Virus record (IMG/VR): IMGVR_UViG_3300025141_000020
Span: 1 to 64,000 of that record
Reading direction: 5' to 3' (one strand)
Length of the DNA: 64,000 nt
This document shows, one piece after another, positions 6,136 through 23,243 of the stretch (its first letter is position 1; every line of letters starts with the position of its first letter). The notes beneath the pieces were generated by a model that saw only the letters and a program-made list of their open reading frames with translations, was not told where the DNA came from and did no database searches. A program made the translations under genes and the position numbers.

Positions 6136-6166
6136 CAAATATAAAAATTATTTTTTACTTATTCAA
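6136..6166 (-). promoter_or_regulatory. Class I promoter TTGAAT-N17-TATATTTG (Bacteroidota -33/-7 type)
   Basis: Exact TAnnTTTG with TTG 20 nt upstream. Confidence 0.7.
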
Positions 6167-7202
6167 CTACCTCTAACTTAACTTTTAAAGTATTTAAAAT
6201 TCTTTTGGTTATCTTATATGGGTCTCCATTACTTGCTGGCCTTCTATCTTCTATATGCCCTTTCCAGTTATTTTGTACCGTGGAAACTGGAATTCTTATA
6301 CTAGCTCCTCTATCGGATACACCATAACTAAACTTTTCAATAGATTGTGTTTCGTGTAATCCAGTAAGTCTTTTTTCATTGTCACTCCCATAGTTGTTAA
6401 TATGTTCTTCATGATAGAAAGAAAAAGTATCACAAATACCTTCTATCATATCTTTTCCACCAAGTTCTCTCATTTTTTTGGTTGAGAAGTTCACATGCAT
6501 TCCTGAACCATTCCAGTCACCGTTTACTGGTTTTGGGTGTAATTCTACTGTAACTCCGTGGCTTTCTGTAATTCTATAAAGTAGGTATCTGCTAACCCAT
6601 AGGTCATCTGAAACTTTTAGTGCTCCTTTACCGAATAGTTGATATTCCCATTGTCCTAACATTACCTCAGCGTTGACACCGGTAATATCTAACCCAATAT
6701 TCATACATGCATCTAAATGTTGTTCTACAATTTCTCTACCAATAACTCTATCTGTCCCAACTCCACAATAGTATTTTCCTTGTGGTTCTGGATATCCTTC
6801 TTTGGGGAATCCTAGGGGTTTACCATCTTTCATTAATACATACTCTTGTTCGAATCCAAACCACCATTCCTCTTGGTGTCTGTGAAAATCGATATCCTCC
6901 AATTCTGCTCTTTCGTTAGTCTTGTGTGAAATACCTTTTTCATTTAATACTTCACATAATGCAAGATAAGACCCAACTCTTTGTGGGTCTGGGTAAACTC
7001 TCACTGGTCTTAGGATACAATCTGAATTATTGCCCACGGCTTGTTGTGTGGAACTACCGTCGAATGACCATTCTGGTAAATCTTCTAGGTTTGGTGTGGT
7101 AATCGTACCATTTAATTCTACAATTTTAGTTTTACTTCTTAAAGTTTGTTCTGGTTTAGTTCCGTCTAACCAGATATATTCAATCTTTGTTTTTATTGTC
7201 AT
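6159..7202 (-). CDS. glnII: Glutamine synthetase type II (auxiliary metabolic gene)
   Basis: EYIWLDG, WSFDGSST, GFEQEY, PQGKYYCGVG, NAEVMLGQWEYQ, WNGSGMH, RLTGLHET, RGASIRIP, EDRRPASNGDPY. Confidence 0.95.
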   Translation of the reverse strand: MTIKTKIEYIWLDGTKPEQTLRSKTKIVELNGTITTPNLEDLPEWSFDGSSTQQAVGNNSDCILRPVRVYPDPQRVGSYLALCEVLNEKGISHKTNERAELEDIDFHRHQEEWWFGFEQEYVLMKDGKPLGFPKEGYPEPQGKYYCGVGTDRVIGREIVEQHLDACMNIGLDITGVNAEVMLGQWEYQLFGKGALKVSDDLWVSRYLLYRITESHGVTVELHPKPVNGDWNGSGMHVNFSTKKMRELGGKDMIEGICDTFSFYHEEHINNYGSDNEKRLTGLHETQSIEKFSYGVSDRGASIRIPVSTVQNNWKGHIEDRRPASNGDPYKITKRILNTLKVKLEVVE

Positions 7203-7370: not shown

Positions 7371-7682
7371 ATGAATGTTATTTTAAATAATAAAGAAATT
7401 CCGGTAGAAATTATGTCTACCCCTAATAGTATTTCTACTGGCATGATGGGTAGAGACCATTTAGATGGTGGTATGTTGTTTGTTTTTGAGGATGTAGGCG
7501 AACGTTCTTTCTGGATGAAAAATTGTTTGATACCTTTAGATATCATTTTTATGGTTAATGGTGAAGTTAGTGAGGTTTACGAAAATTGTGTTCCTTGTGA
7601 ATCAGAGCCTTGTGAAAGATATTGGGGTTTGGCTGATAAAGTTTTAGAATTAAATGGTGGGGAATATTTAAAATTTATATGA
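7371..7682 (+). CDS. DUF192 family protein
   Basis: GMMGR...GMLFVF...SFWMKNCLIPLDIIF...VLELNGG. Confidence 0.9.
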   Translation: MNVILNNKEIPVEIMSTPNSISTGMMGRDHLDGGMLFVFEDVGERSFWMKNCLIPLDIIFMVNGEVSEVYENCVPCESEPCERYWGLADKVLELNGGEYLKFI

Positions 7683-9759: not shown

Positions 9760-9918
9760 ATGAAAAAATTAACGTATTTAACACTAATGGGATTAACATG
9801 TATTTTAGTAGCGTGTGGAGGTGATACAGAGACTGAAGTTATTGAAGAAACACCTTGTACTTCGGACACAACAGCTGTAGAAGTAATTGAAACGCCAACG
9901 GACACAGTTGTAGAATAG
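9760..9918 (+). CDS. Small acidic lipoprotein (52 aa, not in ORF track)
   Basis: MKKLTYLTLMGLTCILVA-CGGDTETEVIEETPC...; lipobox LVAC; own promoter TTGATT-N17-TATTGT (9687-9715) and terminator. Confidence 0.8.
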   Translation: MKKLTYLTLMGLTCILVACGGDTETEVIEETPCTSDTTAVEVIETPTDTVVE

Positions 9919-9941: not shown

Positions 9942-9967
9942 AAAAGGTCCTTCGGGACCTTTTTTTA
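9942..9967. terminator. Bidirectional intrinsic terminator with a UUCG tetraloop
   Basis: AAAAGGTCC-TTCG-GGACCTTTTTTT between convergent genes. Confidence 0.9.
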
Positions 9968-9988: not shown

Positions 9989-11428
9989 CTAACTACCAAT
10001 TTTCTCTTTGATGGTATTAACTAGTTCTTTTTGTACCCATTTAACAAACTCAACATACCTTGTAGGTTTACTGTCCGCTTTTTTCTTCCATGTGCCTTCT
10101 GGGTTTCTAGTGGCTCTACTAAAGAAGTTTAGTCCACTTATATTGGTTATGCATTTATGCCCACCACTATTAGCTTGTATAACGTCCCAAGCTGGCACTG
10201 TTATTTTATCTAATACTATTTTTTGTTTTTCACTTAAATTATCCCAAGGGGTATCAATAATATCAATTGCCATGTTATAGTATTGTGAACCCTCTTTTGG
10301 CATATTTTGTAGGTGGTCTTTGTATAACGCGAATAAATCTGAAGTTTTAAAGCCAATACTATCATCTTGTGCTTTTGTTTCACCAACTCTCTTAATTACT
10401 GAAATAGGTATCATATGTGCTTTTAATTGTGGTTCTATTTTTTTAAGTACTTCTTGAGCTATATCTCCTAAGTTAACACCTTTAAGAGCTCTATCCTTTT
10501 TAAATGGATTGCACGAAGCTTGTACTAACCCCATTGGCCAAGCAACTACGAAGAAATCAGCTTCTGGGTATATTTTAAATGGTGTGTATCTATCATAAGA
10601 ACCCGGTTTAAATAATGCACCACCACCATATTGTACTATTATATTACCATCTAAAGTTAAATTATCACTTTCTTGTTGGGATTTGATGTATTCGGCTTGG
10701 TTTTGTGCCATATCTTCAGGTGAAGCAAATCCTTTTTCTTTTGCATATGAAGTTATATTTTGGTATATGTTTAGTAGGGATGGGGTAGAGTTCATTACCA
10801 GATTTTCTAAGAACCCAGGTTTATTTTTATAAGCTAATAATAACTTATTAGTTAAAAGACCTAACATCCATTTCTTTTCATATGCTTGGTCACCTTTTTC
10901 AAAATCCCTAATTAAGTTCATTACTTGTTCTGGTTCAATATCGTGTTTTGCGTAGTCTGCAGAATCTACGGTATTAATCATCATAATATCTTCATTACTA
11001 AAAATATCACTAGGACTTATGGTTTGTGAGATGGTTTCTACGTTTGACCTTGCTCCTTTAAATTGTGTTGCGGTGTCATCTTCAACACCTGCTTGTGAGT
11101 CATGGTGGTCTGTATGTATCTTAAAGATTGGTTTGCCGTGTGCAAAATCTACAAGTACCGGCATTACATCACCGCTTGCGTCTGGTTTTTTAACAGAAAA
11201 TTCTTTATCCCCATATTGTATAACATGTGAACCTATAACATCAATCCCATAGCTTTCAAGATAATTTTTCATTCCTAATGCTGATACTACTCCGTCTAGG
11301 TCTTGGTGAAAGTATATCTCTGCTTTTGGATATCTGTCTGCTAATTTGTTAATATCCCTAATCCCACCTTCATTTAAAAGTGACCCATTAATATGGTCTA
11401 GTTGTTGTTCTGTTATCTCTATTTTCAT
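9989..11428 (-). CDS. DHH-family phosphoesterase with a capsid-targeting-like leader
   Basis: HQDLDG, VDF, TDHH and C-terminal SGGH (DHHA1) motifs; N-terminus MKIEITEQQLDHINGSLLNE; TATTTATA 4 nt before the ATG. Confidence 0.8.
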   Translation of the reverse strand: MKIEITEQQLDHINGSLLNEGGIRDINKLADRYPKAEIYFHQDLDGVVSALGMKNYLESYGIDVIGSHVIQYGDKEFSVKKPDASGDVMPVLVDFAHGKPIFKIHTDHHDSQAGVEDDTATQFKGARSNVETISQTISPSDIFSNEDIMMINTVDSADYAKHDIEPEQVMNLIRDFEKGDQAYEKKWMLGLLTNKLLLAYKNKPGFLENLVMNSTPSLLNIYQNITSYAKEKGFASPEDMAQNQAEYIKSQQESDNLTLDGNIIVQYGGGALFKPGSYDRYTPFKIYPEADFFVVAWPMGLVQASCNPFKKDRALKGVNLGDIAQEVLKKIEPQLKAHMIPISVIKRVGETKAQDDSIGFKTSDLFALYKDHLQNMPKEGSQYYNMAIDIIDTPWDNLSEKQKIVLDKITVPAWDVIQANSGGHKCITNISGLNFFSRATRNPEGTWKKKADSKPTRYVEFVKWVQKELVNTIKEKIGS

Positions 11429-11442
11429 ATACTATAAATACT

Positions 11443-12006
11443 TTACAATCCTTCTATAAATTTTTGATGCTCTAACTCCCTTCTTTTAGCTAGTCCAGGA
11501 AATTTACTACTAACTCTATAAGTTTTAATTGCTTCCCCTGCTTTTTTATATTCATTAGTATCTAATGTGCCTATACTTTTTAATAGGGATATTACATCAG
11601 CCATTCTTAATCCTGAAGCACCACCATTATAGGATAAAGATAATAAAGCGTCGTACATATTTTGAGTTATTGGTACGTATATTCCTTGGTCCTCCCAATC
11701 CTTAAAAATTTTTCTTAGTCTCTTTGCGTGATAGTTAGAATCTTCTTGTAATTTCTCAGTGGCTTCCTTCTCACAATTTGTACCATCCCCTAATATATCA
11801 CCTTCTTTAACCCCCTCTGTATGTCCATATCCTATTGTCCATTTACCATCACCAATACTATATGCTTTACATTTTAAACCTTCCTCTTTTCTTATATGAC
11901 TCCAATACCATTGTGAAGCTTTTAAACTAGAAGCTCTCATAAAGTTAGAATTATCTAATTGTTCTGAAATTAGTTTAACTTGGTTTTCTGTAATTACTAT
12001 ACGCAT
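11443..12006 (-). CDS. GH24 phage lysozyme (start probably 12006)
   Basis: EEGLKCKAYSIGDGKWTIGYGHT (E-D-T catalytic arrangement), YDALLSLSYNGG, GLAKRRELE; leader MRIVITENQVKLISEQ. Confidence 0.9.
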   Translation of the reverse strand: MRIVITENQVKLISEQLDNSNFMRASSLKASQWYWSHIRKEEGLKCKAYSIGDGKWTIGYGHTEGVKEGDILGDGTNCEKEATEKLQEDSNYHAKRLRKIFKDWEDQGIYVPITQNMYDALLSLSYNGGASGLRMADVISLLKSIGTLDTNEYKKAGEAIKTYRVSSKFPGLAKRRELEHQKFIEGL

Positions 12007-12067
12007 AAAAAAGTCGTTTACAATAAATACAATCATAAACGACTTACTACATAAAGTAGTTATTTAT

Positions 12068-12967
12068 CTACATACAACTAAAATACCTCTCTCCCCTATC
12101 ACAAAGAATAGTAACCGCATTATTTTTATTGTTATCTCTTAGCCATTGAAATGCTGCGAATATATTAGCTGCAGCACTTATACCTACAAACAACCCGTAT
12201 TTTTTTGCTAAGTGTCTTGCACATTTTTTTGCACATGCTGTAGACACTGTTCTAACCTCATCTACCTTATCTAGGTCCACGAGGAATTTACTACCGTCTC
12301 CTATCCCTTGGATACCGTGAAGTCCTGGTTCACCACCACTCATAACAGCACTCTCTGTTGGCTCTATTGCTACTGTCTTTATGGTAGGCCACATTTCTTT
12401 TAAAAACTTATCGGTACCCATAAGGGTACCACCAGTTCCTGTTCCAGCCACAAAGACGTCTGGTGTACACTCTCTTATTTCATTAGCATCTTTAAATTGG
12501 TTGTATATTTCTGGACCTGTGCCCATATAATGTGCTTCTATATTTAACGGGTTGTGGAATTGGTTGCAATTAAACCAACCATTTTTATTACATATGTCAT
12601 CTCTTAAAGCTATTGCTCCATCAAAGTCTCCTTCTTCAACCTCAATTAATTCTGCACCATAAAACCTAAACATATTTTTCCTTTCTTCAGACATATTAGA
12701 TGGCATGATAATAACCATTTTATAACCTCTTTCCGCGGCTAACATTGCAAATGAGATACCACTATTACCTGATGTCGCTTCACATAGGGTATCACCTCGT
12801 TCTATTAGTTTTAATTTCTCTGCATTATTAATAATAAAGCTTGCCATTCTATCTTTAACAGAACCACTAGGATTCATAAATTCAGATTTGCCCCAAACGG
12901 TAAAATCCCCAATGGTAATGGGGATTAACGGGGTGTTACCCACATAATCAGATAGTCTTTGTTTCAT
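12068..12967 (-). CDS. cysK: Cysteine synthase (O-acetylserine sulfhydrylase, PLP-dependent; auxiliary metabolic gene)
   Basis: GNTPL, NPSGSVKDR (PLP lysine), EATSGNSG, GTGTGGT, HGIQGIG, DRGERY. Confidence 0.92.
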   Translation of the reverse strand: MKQRLSDYVGNTPLIPITIGDFTVWGKSEFMNPSGSVKDRMASFIINNAEKLKLIERGDTLCEATSGNSGISFAMLAAERGYKMVIIMPSNMSEERKNMFRFYGAELIEVEEGDFDGAIALRDDICNKNGWFNCNQFHNPLNIEAHYMGTGPEIYNQFKDANEIRECTPDVFVAGTGTGGTLMGTDKFLKEMWPTIKTVAIEPTESAVMSGGEPGLHGIQGIGDGSKFLVDLDKVDEVRTVSTACAKKCARHLAKKYGLFVGISAAANIFAAFQWLRDNNKNNAVTILCDRGERYFSCM

Positions 12968-13395
12968 TAGTCTACTATTTCTACTGAAAATTTGTCTCCT
13001 TGTTGGATTTGTTCTACAATCTCTAATCCTTCTGTTACTTTACCAAAACATGTATGTTGTTTATCTAGGTGTTGTGTTCCTTGTCTACTATGACAAAGAA
13101 AGAATTGTGAGCCACCAGTATTTCTACCAGCATGAGCCATAGATAACACCCCTTTGTCGTGGTATTGGTTATCCCCGTCTAGCTCACAATCAATTTTATA
13201 TCCTGGACCACCCATTCCGTTTCCGTTAGGACACCCACCCTGTGCTACGAAATTAGGGATGACTCTATGGAAGTTAAGGTCTTTATAAAAACCATCTTTT
13301 GCTAATTTAACAAAATTATTTACTGTGTTTGGTGCGTCTTTCTCATAGAACTCTACCACCATAGTTCCTTTGTTTGTGTTAATTTTACCTTTCAT
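12967..13395 (-). CDS. Cyclophilin-type peptidyl-prolyl isomerase
   Basis: [39 protein letters not shown]. Confidence 0.95.
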
Positions 13396-14682: not shown

Positions 14683-15858
14683 TTATCTTCCTACCTCTTT
14701 TATATATTTATCTTGTGTGTCTTCCCACGATAAATCAATTACATCCCAATAAAATAATTGTTCTGGTTTAATTCTATCTTGGTCACACATATTTTTATAT
14801 CTTCTTATTGCTTTTTTCTTCCACCATTTTTCTGTATAAGGTATGTCGTCTTTGAATTTCTTTTTTAATTTTAAGTCTTCTTCTATTATTTCATTTCTTA
14901 GAAACTCACAGCCGTTATCATACATCATTGCAAGATAGACCCCTCTCTTGAACCCGTGGTCATAATCTGAACCCTTTATACCACAATGTTTAAAAACCTT
15001 GTTAATTATGTTCTGTTTAGGTCCTGTAGCGCTTATAGCTTTCTTATGTTCTTCTGGGTGATTATCTTTCAACCATTTATTCCAAGGTAAATATGCACTA
15101 TCATCTGGTTTTAACCTAACCTTACCGGATGTTTCACCCATTGTTTTGAAGTGCGGCATTCCATTGTACATTGAATTTATACCATATAGTGATGTTGTTC
15201 CTACAGCTATTAGTTTGTCTCCGTATTTTTCTTCCCAAGCATCTCTAATAGTCTTACAAGTAGTTAGTGCTGCTATTAATTTGCCCATTAACATATTATA
15301 CCCACCTGGTTGAGTGGAGCATATAGTTGTGGCTATAGCTGTATTATTTAGTTTGTGTTGGTCGAACTTATTGGTTTTATCCCAACCTATGTAAGCGTCT
15401 CTAACTTTAATACTTGTAACGTCAGACCCCAAACAAATCAAACCAAGGACTTTCTCTGTTTTCCTATCTCTAACCCAGAATTTCATATTACGTCCAGGAT
15501 TTGCAACCCATTCCATTGTATGGATAAGCTTACGATAGTTTACCCATTCAGTAACTCCCTTTCCTGGTTCTGCTATTTCAACATAAGGTTCTAAGTCTTC
15601 AATTTGTTTTATAGTCTTTTCTAAATTATCTAAATCTGATGGTAACCATAGATTATATCTGTACGTGTATAATTTTTTCTTTATCTTAGACATCTTACCA
15701 CCCTTATTCATTTCTTGCCACTTTTTATAAAGTGTTTGTTCTTCTACTGACATTTCTTTAAGCATGTCTAAATTATCGATTAGTTTTTGTTTCGTCTCCT
15801 CGAAATTAAAAGTGTATTCTGACTCTATAATATCAAATATTGTTGTTTGTTCTCCCAT
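14683..15858 (-). CDS. DUF4338 / Druantia DruA-like protein
   Basis: PGRNMKFWVRD...LGLICLGSDV.SI.VRD.YIGW...GYNMLMGKLIA...TTSLYG..SMYN...GETSG. Confidence 0.8.
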   Translation of the reverse strand: MGEQTTIFDIIESEYTFNFEETKQKLIDNLDMLKEMSVEEQTLYKKWQEMNKGGKMSKIKKKLYTYRYNLWLPSDLDNLEKTIKQIEDLEPYVEIAEPGKGVTEWVNYRKLIHTMEWVANPGRNMKFWVRDRKTEKVLGLICLGSDVTSIKVRDAYIGWDKTNKFDQHKLNNTAIATTICSTQPGGYNMLMGKLIAALTTCKTIRDAWEEKYGDKLIAVGTTSLYGINSMYNGMPHFKTMGETSGKVRLKPDDSAYLPWNKWLKDNHPEEHKKAISATGPKQNIINKVFKHCGIKGSDYDHGFKRGVYLAMMYDNGCEFLRNEIIEEDLKLKKKFKDDIPYTEKWWKKKAIRRYKNMCDQDRIKPEQLFYWDVIDLSWEDTQDKYIKEVGR

Positions 15859-15941: not shown

Positions 15942-16190
15942 ATGGCTTGTACTAATTGTAAAAAGAACGCTAAGACTAAAACAGATAACTTAAAAGTTGG
16001 CGCTGAGTCTATTTTAAATTCATTGGATTCCTCGTTGGAAGAACAGAAACTTAAATTAGCTGAAAAATTGTTAGATGGTTCAACTAGTGTATTAAATAAT
16101 CTGGAGAAGGTTGCTGTAACTATTTTTGGGTGGATTCCTTTAGCCGTTGGTTATTATTATATAATTAAATTTATTATTTCTTTATTTTAA
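15942..16190 (+). CDS. Small CxxC protein with a C-terminal TM helix
   Basis: MACTNCKK...VAVTIFGWIPLAVGYYYIIKFIISLF; TATTTATG at 15919. Confidence 0.7.
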   Translation: MACTNCKKNAKTKTDNLKVGAESILNSLDSSLEEQKLKLAEKLLDGSTSVLNNLEKVAVTIFGWIPLAVGYYYIIKFIISLF

Positions 16191-17199
16191 AGTTTTCTCC
16201 TTCTGACAAACTTTCTAACATTCTTATTTCGTCACCATGTAACTCTTTAGGCATTATAATTTGGGGTTTAATCACCAGGTTGCCCGATTTTCCGTTTGGG
16301 GTTTTCATTCCTTTTCCGTTCACACTAAAATTTCTAGTTATATCGGATAGAGGTGGTACAGTTATTTTTATAGCTCTTTCAAAATGAGGTATTTCTATAG
16401 TCCCTCCAAGAATCATATCCATAATCGGTGTTTGTGGTTCATAAATTAAATCACTAGCTAATAATTTAAAGTGTGGGTGTCTATTTATAACGACCTCTAT
16501 TAGGAGGTCACCAGGATGTCCTTGGTAAATCTCGTCTCCACCACCTTTATAAATAAAAGTTTGTCCTGTTGATAGGTTGGATGGGATTGTAAAGTCTACT
16601 ACCCTATCTTGAGTTATACCTCCCTTTCCTTTACAGTTAGTACAAGGTTTAATAACAATTTTACCTCTCCCTGCACAACTATTACACTGGTGTCTTTGTA
16701 CTTGTCTAAAGAAAGCGTTTCCAGCAACCTTTTCTATATGTCCTGTCCCGTTACACGTACTACAATTAACACTTTCACCACCCGCTCCTACACAAGCAGC
16801 ACAGTTAACGTTTTTTCTATATTTTAACTTTTTTGAATGACTAAAGTACATATCTTCTAAGTCTACTCTTAGTGGTATATTTAAATTTCTACCTTTATTA
16901 ACCCTTTGTTGTCGTTTGCCTCTACCAAAAAATTGACCAAAAAGGTCTTCCATTTCTGGACCACCTCTGTGGTGACTTCTGTGGTGACCACCAAATGGGT
17001 TTTGTTCACCCATGTCATATCTTTGTTTTTTTTCTGGGTTACTTAAGGTATCGTAAGCTTCACTTACTTCTTTAAAAACCGTTTCATTACCGCCTTTATC
17101 TGGGTGATGTTGTTTAGAAAGCTTACGAAAAGCCTTTTTTATGTCATCTTGTGATGAATCTCTATTTATATTTAGAGTTTTATAGTAATCTTTAATCAT
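16174..17199 (-). CDS. dnaJ: DnaJ (Hsp40) chaperone
   Basis: J-domain HPD, four CxxCxGxG zinc repeats, C-terminal GDL motif. Confidence 0.95.
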   Translation of the reverse strand: MIKDYYKTLNINRDSSQDDIKKAFRKLSKQHHPDKGGNETVFKEVSEAYDTLSNPEKKQRYDMGEQNPFGGHHRSHHRGGPEMEDLFGQFFGRGKRQQRVNKGRNLNIPLRVDLEDMYFSHSKKLKYRKNVNCAACVGAGGESVNCSTCNGTGHIEKVAGNAFFRQVQRHQCNSCAGRGKIVIKPCTNCKGKGGITQDRVVDFTIPSNLSTGQTFIYKGGGDEIYQGHPGDLLIEVVINRHPHFKLLASDLIYEPQTPIMDMILGGTIEIPHFERAIKITVPPLSDITRNFSVNGKGMKTPNGKSGNLVIKPQIIMPKELHGDEIRMLESLSEGENFKIKK

Positions 17200-22304: not shown

Positions 22305-23243
22305 CTATGTTCTCCATTTTCTATTTCCACAGCATTCGCTTGCGGCAACAGCAATATTTCCTCCTCCTTTGATGCCGAGCTTTTTTGCGTCTGCATCAGA
22401 TATTTCAAGGTTTTTATGGTACTCCACCGCTTCACCATCAGGGAAAACAAGTACTCCTCCACCCTCATCATAATATGGTCCTGCCGAGTTACCTTGGTCG
22501 GAGATACAAATTACTAACCCTCCTTTTTCCCAGTCGTAAGGAATCCACTTCATACAACCATCCTTAAACCAATCTGGTTTCTTTGTTCCTGGATTATCTT
22601 CAATCCTCATACAATCTACAAACATTTGCCATCTATTAACATCACCTAGTCCGATAACATATTTAAGACAAGCTTTAATCCTATCACAATCATTTCCGGA
22701 TTCTGCTGGAATGTCTATATCGATAAACCAATCGTCACCATCTATCTCTATACTATCTCCACCATCATCAGTCCCTTGTTGTTGTTTACAATTACATTCT
22801 CTCTGACATAAAATATACGCTGCTGAATCTTTAGGGCTTGCGCTACCGTAACAATACCCACAAAGTGAATTAAGGGTATTCCATCCAACTTTTCCGTCTA
22901 CACTTAACTGTCCAGCATCTCTTTGGAATTCTTCTACTGCTTTCTTTGTTTCTTTTTCAAATTTACCGTCACAATTAGTCCAGTTTTCTATACATCCTTC
23001 GTTTATTCCACCACCTTGTTTTGTTGGGTTATACGGTCCCATCTCCCCACATCCTTTTGCTAAAAGATGTTGTATCATTTTAACCACATCACCTCTAGAC
23101 CCTCTTTTAGCTACCTTTATCTTACACCATATATCACATGGGACATCACCTTCCCTAATTCTCCCACCACTATATTGTTCAGATATAACTTGTGAAATTA
23201 TTTCAGTTAATTGTGATTCAGTTAATTTAATTTTTTTCATCAT
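22305..23243 (-). CDS. Cys-rich peptidoglycan-binding-domain protein with a capsid-targeting-like leader
   Basis: RGSRGDVVKMIQHLL...DGKFEKETKKAVEEFQ...LSVDGKVGWNTL (PG_binding_1); leader MKKIKLTESQLTEIISQVISEQ. Confidence 0.75.
   Translation of the reverse strand: MMKKIKLTESQLTEIISQVISEQYSGGRIREGDVPCDIWCKIKVAKRGSRGDVVKMIQHLLAKGCGEMGPYNPTKQGGGINEGCIENWTNCDGKFEKETKKAVEEFQRDAGQLSVDGKVGWNTLNSLCGYCYGSASPKDSAAYILCQRECNCKQQQGTDDGGDSIEIDGDDWFIDIDIPAESGNDCDRIKACLKYVIGLGDVNRWQMFVDCMRIEDNPGTKKPDWFKDGCMKWIPYDWEKGGLVICISDQGNSAGPYYDEGGGVLVFPDGEAVEYHKNLEISDADAKKLGIKGGGNIAVAASECCGNRKWRT

Follow-up and report, generated by a model that had tools for sequence, protein, structure and literature searches.

A tagged, phage-only DHH/DHHA1 phosphodiesterase in a huge marine T4-related phage: a candidate head-delivered enzyme

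Why does a marine virus genome encode a DHH/DHHA1 phosphoesterase that shares an N-terminal leader with the lysozyme encoded directly upstream, and on what might such an enzyme act? The gene lies in a 64,000-nt window, the whole stretch analysed here, which comprises the first 64 kb of a 210,568-bp IMG/VR virus record. The contig has 33.6% G+C and is ~66% complete as estimated by CheckV. Translation table 11, the sole code applied, fits it well. The phage is a huge, marine relative of T4. The contig encodes the morphogenesis genes listed in Table 1 together with PolB, DnaB, RNR, and a sigma-70 factor, and its capsid protein shows only distant kinship to those of cultured T4-like phages. A protein encoded by one relative contains a Por_Secre_tail domain, and several contig genes have TAnnTTTG boxes, which we take to be the Bacteroidota type of promoter box, just ahead of them. 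These two features point to a Bacteroidota host.

Table 1. Coordinates of the DHH locus, of the parts of its protein (P0001), and of morphogenesis genes elsewhere on the contig. Window and contig numbering coincide; aa, residues of P0001.
Feature	Coordinates	Strand	Basis or remark
DHH/DHHA1 phosphoesterase gene (P0001, 479 aa)	9989..11428	-	ORF, ATG to TAG
Leader (aa 1-20), (I)-T-E at aa 5-7, (L)-N-E at aa 18-20	11369..11428	-	leader profile; low pLDDT
DHH catalytic domain (~aa 33-170)	10919..11332	-	invariant columns
Motif I (H41, D43, D45)	11291-11308	-	
Motif II (D94)	11135-11152	-	
Motif III DHH(D) (D107-H108-H109)	11099-11110	-	
Motif IV (D155)	10955-10966	-	
Helical inter-lobe region (~aa 171-255, four helices)	10664..10918	-	DSSP of model; aligned lengths
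DHHA1 lobe (~aa 256-440)	10109..10663	-	alignment and models
Invariant R280	10589-10591	-	
Helical DHHA1 insertion, ~100 aa (~aa 315-420), with invariant K346 and E350	10169-10486	-	
S421-G422-G423-H424 (DHHA1)	10157-10168	-	
C-terminal helix (aa 457-478)	9995..10060	-	variable in relatives; onset of C-terminal fusions
Bidirectional intrinsic-terminator hairpin	9942..9963	.	between DHH gene and convergent + strand genes
TATTTATA promoter-like motif	11433..11440	-	12 nt before DHH ATG, in the gap after the lysozyme stop
GH24 phage lysozyme	11443..12006	-	PF00959, 2.7e-19; directly upstream of DHH gene
TATTTATT	12022-12029	-	23 nt upstream of lysozyme start 12006
DUF192 gene	7371..7682	+	most conserved neighbour
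Sheath-like protein	contig 96547..99942		
gp23-type capsid protein	contig 147401..149197		T4-type
gp21-family prohead protease	contig 150869..151570		PF03420, 2.7e-27
gp20 portal	contig 152892..154727		T4-type morphogenesis
Large terminase	contig 154772..156493		

The ORF reported by the first-pass annotation is real, spanning 479 codons from ATG to TAG, and its assignment to the DHH/DHHA1 enzymes was borne out. Motifs I-IV and the SGGH are all present, and the metal-binding and GGH residues (H41, D43, D45, D94, D107, H108, H109, D155, G422, G423, and H424), together with R280, were invariant in an alignment of 51 sequences with identities down to 28%. The AlphaFold model (pLDDT 91.3, pTM 0.89) matched many DHH enzymes with a Foldseek probability of 1.0, and Foldseek and VIA-align returned DHH enzymes only. 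In VIA-align, the pGpG phosphodiesterase PggH of V. cholerae (7d62) and an archaeal PAP phosphatase (8a8k) both scored Z 17.5, followed by TM1595, Bacteroides Nrn, Rv2837c, and NrnA at Z 13-14. RecJ and archaeal RecJ/Cdc45 cores were significant matches at Z 12-14, with the RecJ cores at Z ≤13, ~4 Z units under PggH and the PAP phosphatase, and the CRISPR-associated NrN scored Z 11.4. Based on the model, PggH, NrnA, and PAP phosphatase, all stand-alone enzymes with small substrates, are the nearest in architecture.

PggH, NrnA, TM1595, Rv2837c, DhhP, and the PAP phosphatase share with the phage protein the two-lobed fold, the metal motifs, and the GGH. The phage protein differs from these stand-alone enzymes in its low identity (11-16%), in ~190 extra residues, in its N-terminal tag, and in belonging to a phage-only family that falls below the Pfam threshold. 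The extra residues correspond to the large insertions noticed at first pass, namely the four-helix inter-lobe region, which is far longer than the short linker of the compact NrnA subfamily (~310-330 aa), the ~100-aa DHHA1 insertion, and the C-terminal helix. Only 255-284 of the 479 residues align to NrnA-type enzymes, which are themselves 290-340 aa long. The C-terminal half modelled alone (pLDDT 91) aligned ~100 of its 225 residues to canonical DHHA1 lobes at Z 7-8.8. The RxRxR motif of the NrnA DHHA1 lobe, which binds the 5' phosphate (PMC9779919), is absent and replaced by the single invariant Arg, R280, in a Y-D-R-Y context, so the handling of the substrate cannot be read from the known enzymes. 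Past DHHA1, the model leaves no residues that could form an OB fold. The DHH domain begins at ~aa 33, and neither the membrane helices, PAS, and degenerate GGDEF of the GdpP type nor a signal peptide or any membrane segment was found in the protein.

The Pfam PF01368 match reached 19.1 bits against a cut-off of 28.1, PF02272 was not matched, and sub-threshold Pfam DHH matches occurred in 22 of 40 relatives. Missing the cut-off is a failure of sensitivity rather than counter-evidence on homology. Sequence searches with the protein against PHROGs, NCBIfam, and the PDB gave zero matches, and a PDB profile search was marginal (E 0.2). Another weak DHH match on the contig (90475..92661) was rejected as a relative, with an hhalign probability of 0.2%. 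A word search recovered >4,133 relatives, mostly marine, and the family comprises >4,000 clusters when grouped at 90% identity. An exhaustive search gave 376 clusters at 50% identity, far too few to hold the NrnA and RecJ families of cells as well. The Atlas neighbours were all viral, and no cultured relative was found. Taken from sequence and model together, the protein is almost certainly an active DHH/DHHA1 phosphodiesterase of a novel, phage-only subfamily.

The leader was evaluated with a profile built from 13 other N-termini, the DHH protein being excluded, which was searched against the 1579 Met-started peptides of the contig. The DHH N-terminus was the top non-seed match (E 4e-4, 17.1 bits), and the best of 1579 shuffled control peptides reached 12.5 bits. 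The leader described at first pass was thus recovered by an independent profile. The tag forms an amphipathic helix of ~21 residues with an M-K-K start, (I/L)-(T/S)-E near residue 8, and (V/I/L)-x-E near residue 21. Its low pLDDT in the DHH model (57-66) implies that it does not pack against the domain. The tag recurs on about a dozen further phage proteins, including the GH24 lysozyme from its second Met, a PG_binding_1 protein (22305..23240), proteins encoded beside the terminase and sheath genes, and several very acidic proteins of small size. The carriers are soluble, and no membrane segments were detected in them. The lysozyme probably starts at this second Met (12006), where the shared leader begins. 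On the minus strand at 12011-12045 of the window, TATTTATT and the first ATG of the lysozyme ORF lie inside a 14-pair hairpin with a T run behind it.

Codon position 2 of the tag was the most conserved (0.59 vs 0.43 and 0.49 for the other positions; background ~0.3), indicating that selection acts on the tag peptide. The same observation makes an RNA-level role of the leader, for instance as a start-codon operator, less likely, and signal peptides were ruled out because the leaders are hydrophilic amphipathic helices on carriers without membrane segments. Across 80 related IMG/VR loci, the leader profile identified 55 more tagged ORFs, a sigma factor among them. Some relatives encode an ECF-type sigma factor that has the shared leader (L064:8481-9104, +) or is fused C-terminal to the DHH module (P0128), a hint that the delivered proteins may include a sigma factor. 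Within the DHH family, [LIVMF]-x-E-[SGT] immediately precedes the start of the conserved domain in 154 of 191 members. In most relatives the presequence is just 8 aa long and ends in (I/L)-x-E, and a few members have none, so that the fold does not depend on it.

This arrangement resembles the internal proteins and Alt of T4, in which a short N-terminal presequence (CTS), likewise with an M-K start and an (L/I)-x-E end, is placed on unrelated proteins. The T4 gp21 protease cleaves after L/I-x-E, and the 10-aa CTS suffices for foreign proteins to be loaded into the head and delivered into the cell (PMC9026906). The likeness extends to the gp20-, gp21-, and gp23-type head genes of the phage. The phage tag differs from the T4 CTS in its length (~21 vs 10 aa) and its two candidate sites, shares no sequence similarity with it, is recognised here from sequence, and has a cargo that includes enzymes not known in T4 heads.

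The first-pass annotation had also described the gene as late-expressed, on the strength of a motif upstream of the ATG. The motif TATTTATA is indeed present and its placement is non-random, whereas the late label did not hold. The octamer TATTTATW occurs in the window at the frequency expected by chance (36 observed vs 36.05 expected). However, 45 of its 130 copies on the contig lie ≤35 nt upstream of a start on the same strand, with peaks at -12 and -23. It stands ahead of the terminase (-12), portal, and sheath genes and also ahead of the genes for DnaB helicase, DnaJ, and DUF192 and of the PolB operon; the gp23-type capsid gene lacks it. With such mixed gene classes behind it, late timing cannot be read from the motif, which gives no support to late expression. 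Few genes have the T4 late box TATAAATA upstream (6/181). TATTTATW was found ahead of 8 of ~13 tagged genes vs 30% of all genes, a modest enrichment. On this sequence evidence, it is best called a phage-specific promoter-like element to which no timing can be assigned, and its -12 position would yield almost leaderless mRNAs.

A few genes outside the window have TAnnTTTG boxes close upstream (near contig 145962, 168198, 168837, 182082, and 203069). TAnnTTTG forms a promoter class separate from TATTTATW, and the genes behind it may be transcribed by the host polymerase. At contig 179922-183223 (+), three tandem paralogues of ~160-175 aa are alike in their first 45-50 residues (E 1e-11 to 1e-15), and at least one of them has a TAnnTTTG box ahead. 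Within the window, four giant ORFs of 1137, 1387, 1254, and 2883 aa follow one another at 41887-63107 (-); a PHROGs scan with the first three gave zero family matches. A homologue of the Druantia defence protein DruA (PF14236, 3e-24; PHROG 19197) is encoded at 14683-15858 (-).

The DHH gene closes a minus-strand operon, with a gap of 14 nt between the lysozyme stop and its ATG. Among related loci, drawn from 80 IMG/VR loci, the DUF192 gene is convergent and downstream of the DHH gene in 58 of 68, and a GH24 lysozyme is directly upstream in 30 of 78. In sampled loci without GH24 (L086, L044, and L025), the upstream gene encodes a leader-tagged protein that by eye resembles a PG-binding or SleB-type wall enzyme. 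The tag was detected on 17 of 74 upstream genes at a strict threshold, and most of the others have variants by eye. A 642-kb phage relative has no lysozyme beside its DHH gene, and the pairing is hence lineage-specific. One metagenome contig joins window position 11440 to 11980, skipping the lysozyme gene, and another has 301 unrelated letters in place of 11465-11773. The position upstream of the DHH gene is one at which strains swap genes.

The other surroundings are metabolic (cysteine synthase, cyclophilin, and DnaJ) rather than structural, and in relatives the DHH gene adjoins NUDIX and thymidylate synthase. Host-like auxiliary genes at window 6159-7202, 12068-13395, and 16174-17199 (-) encode a glutamine synthetase-like protein, a PLP-dependent cysteine-synthase-like enzyme, a cyclophilin, and a full DnaJ. 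Encoded in convergent orientation to the DHH gene, a 645-aa protein (P0270; 7679-9616, +) displays by eye a leader-like N-terminus, for which the profile was not significant, a PG_binding_1-like stretch, and an HExxH zincin motif. Its sole family match was the anthrax lethal factor domain family, below threshold (E 0.0033), and from its sequence it looks like a metallopeptidase that cuts wall or protein. Just past the terminator, a 52-aa ORF (9760-9918, +) has a lipoprotein signal with the lipobox L-V-A-C. Neither cas nor corA was found near the DHH gene in its phage context, and no holin was identified.

Approximately 40% of the DHH relatives are extended at the C-terminus, giving proteins of two to three domains in which the DHH module is always N-terminal. 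The wall-type partners are M23 peptidase, GH19, LAS-type peptidase, and PG_binding_1, and the others are SET, GNAT, an ECF-type sigma factor, and a SAM-lyase/DUF3293 domain (three clusters). The one fusion checked on DNA reads through under table 11. An apparent FtsH fusion (P0219) was set aside as a probable chimera or fragment, as the FtsH part comes after just the first 173 residues of the DHH module. The extensions had no match elsewhere on the contig. Polyvalent proteins (Iyer et al. 2017, PMC5512222), which are injected with phage DNA and whose wall hydrolases aid entry, likewise join a nucleotide-acting enzyme to peptidoglycan hydrolases and protein- or SAM-modifying domains. Unlike the multi-domain relatives, the DHH protein of the window is a single module, and the DHH domain is not mentioned in the text of that paper.

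The SAM-lyase fusions bear on the possible substrate. SAM-AMP is a type III CRISPR signal, with Bacteroidetes among its carriers, and is degraded by the DHH enzyme NrN or by a relative of SAM lyase; phages encode such lyases (PMC10600005, PMC12255297). NrN is a DHH-family small-substrate phosphodiesterase closest to PggH (PMC10600005). The SAM-AMP phosphodiesterase NrN of Bacteroides fragilis (9lq9/9lqb) aligned 235 of its 252 residues to the phage enzyme, three relatives of which are fused to a domain of the type that provides the other known SAM-AMP-degrading activity (PMC12255297). In contrast to NrN, the phage enzyme is twice the size and has no CRISPR or CorA context, and the lyase domain may serve anti-restriction. 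By analogy, the fusions are suggestive of SAM-AMP, with ordinary anti-restriction SAM lyases being equally possible. A counter-signalling role of jumbo-phage DHH phosphodiesterases is already in print as a prediction (Iyer et al. 2021, PMC7824862). The enzymes considered there are ordinary-sized and NrnA-/NrnB-like, match the present one only at the level of the fold (TM ~0.3), and have no tag or fusions. An archaeal membrane-associated DHH-DHHA1 nuclease that degrades cA4 belongs to the same superfamily.

Marine metagenomes contain the DHH region with much strain variation. At ≥85% identity, the contig depth over the DHH gene was several-fold higher than that over the lysozyme gene, indicating that the DHH gene is the better conserved of the two, and it was also more conserved than its flanks across co-occurring strains. 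Such conservation is unusually high for a counter-defence gene and fits a housekeeping function better than an arms race. A single RNA run yielded no RNA over the DHH gene. The lone contig from this run covers 9771-9907, within the small lipoprotein ORF, and might stem from DNA carry-over.

How could these observations fit together? The tag would most likely work as the capsid-targeting sequence of T4 does, recruiting the DHH protein to the prohead core, with a prohead core protein as its likely partner, before the gp21-type protease clips it off at (L/I/V)-x-E. Together with the tagged lysozyme from the gene immediately upstream, the enzyme would be carried in the head and reach the cell along with the phage DNA, ahead of all phage gene expression. 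Once inside, it would cleave a small phosphodiester, for which a nucleotide signal of immunity or stress, or the linear product of such a signal, is the most plausible candidate. Loading into the head and delivery on entry, to which the shared tag, the gp21-type protease, the pairing with a tagged wall enzyme, and the fusions point, is the most economical reading by analogy, and we put it at close to an even chance. An immune signal is a plausible substrate, again by analogy. The destruction of CBASS or type III CRISPR messengers, as proposed at first pass, would be one such role and is a reasonable candidate. The explanation as a whole, a phage-only DHH phosphodiesterase that is packaged in the head via its tag, injected, and directed at a small phosphodiester signal, is tentative and somewhat less probable than its delivery step. 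Two considerations weigh against packaging: (L/I)-x-E is short and frequent by chance, and the E-S-G junction could be structural; moreover, a lysozyme neighbour could equally belong to a lysis module. A more far-reaching form, which we regard as unlikely, is that the ~21-residue tag marks a whole head-loaded, injected set in huge marine T4-related phages of Bacteroidota, including wall hydrolases, very acidic proteins, the sigma factor (in relatives), and the DHH phosphodiesterase, the last being a pre-made anti-immune enzyme that would remove cyclic oligonucleotides, SAM-AMP, or linear products as early as the first second of infection.

The strong conservation and the metabolic neighbours keep nucleotide salvage as a rival. 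In that case, the protein would be a nanoRNase or pAp phosphatase that is synthesised in the course of infection, stays in the cytoplasm, and finishes degrading fragments of host RNA or DNA to mononucleotides, on which phage replication would draw. The leader would then do something else, for example help the enzyme to assemble with a partner or regulate its stability. Similarly shaped stand-alone DHH-DHHA1 enzymes act as nanoRNases and pAp phosphatases (PMC9779919). Many jumbo phages and giant viruses carry such genes, and the NUDIX and thymidylate synthase genes of the relatives are in keeping with this role. Salvage is nevertheless rather unlikely: it leaves unexplained why the tag is common to wall enzymes, why a tagged wall enzyme is the partner in many loci, and why the C-terminus is fused to peptidoglycan hydrolases and a SAM lyase, and the RxRxR typical of NrnA is absent.

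The same persistent pairing and fusion with GH24, M23, GH19, LAS-type, and PG_binding_1 domains would also suit an accessory of a cell-wall attack module acting on the envelope side, at lysis or entry. Such an accessory could lower c-di-AMP, raising turgor and sensitising the wall, or could cut a phosphodiester-linked envelope polymer. The PG-binding-like stretch and HExxH of the convergent 645-aa protein and the adjoining lipoprotein ORF agree with this role, but the DHH protein has no signal peptide or membrane segment, a holin was not identified, DHHA1 enzymes act on nucleotides, and the tag is also carried by acidic proteins and by the sigma factor of a relative, none of which has a lysis role. 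We consider this explanation improbable. Least likely, and very improbable, is an exonuclease of the RecJ type that degrades single-stranded DNA 5'-3' in recombination or in the breakdown of host DNA. The significant matches to RecJ and RecJ/Cdc45 cores and an SbcC-like protein encoded on the contig speak for it; against it, those cores rank well under PggH and the PAP phosphatase, the protein ends after DHHA1 with no OB-fold domain, and the neighbouring genes do not form a recombination module.

The phage enzymes known to degrade immune nucleotides (Acb1, Apyc1, viral ring nucleases, and SAM-AMP lyase) are believed to be synthesised after entry. If the head-delivery reading is true, a pre-packaged phosphodiesterase would represent a different timing strategy against immune nucleotides. 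The DHH family, being all viral and missed by the Pfam thresholds, PHROGs, and NCBIfam, merits a family model of its own, and the shared tag would provide a sequence-based rule for predicting which proteins an abundant, uncultured group of ocean phages injects.
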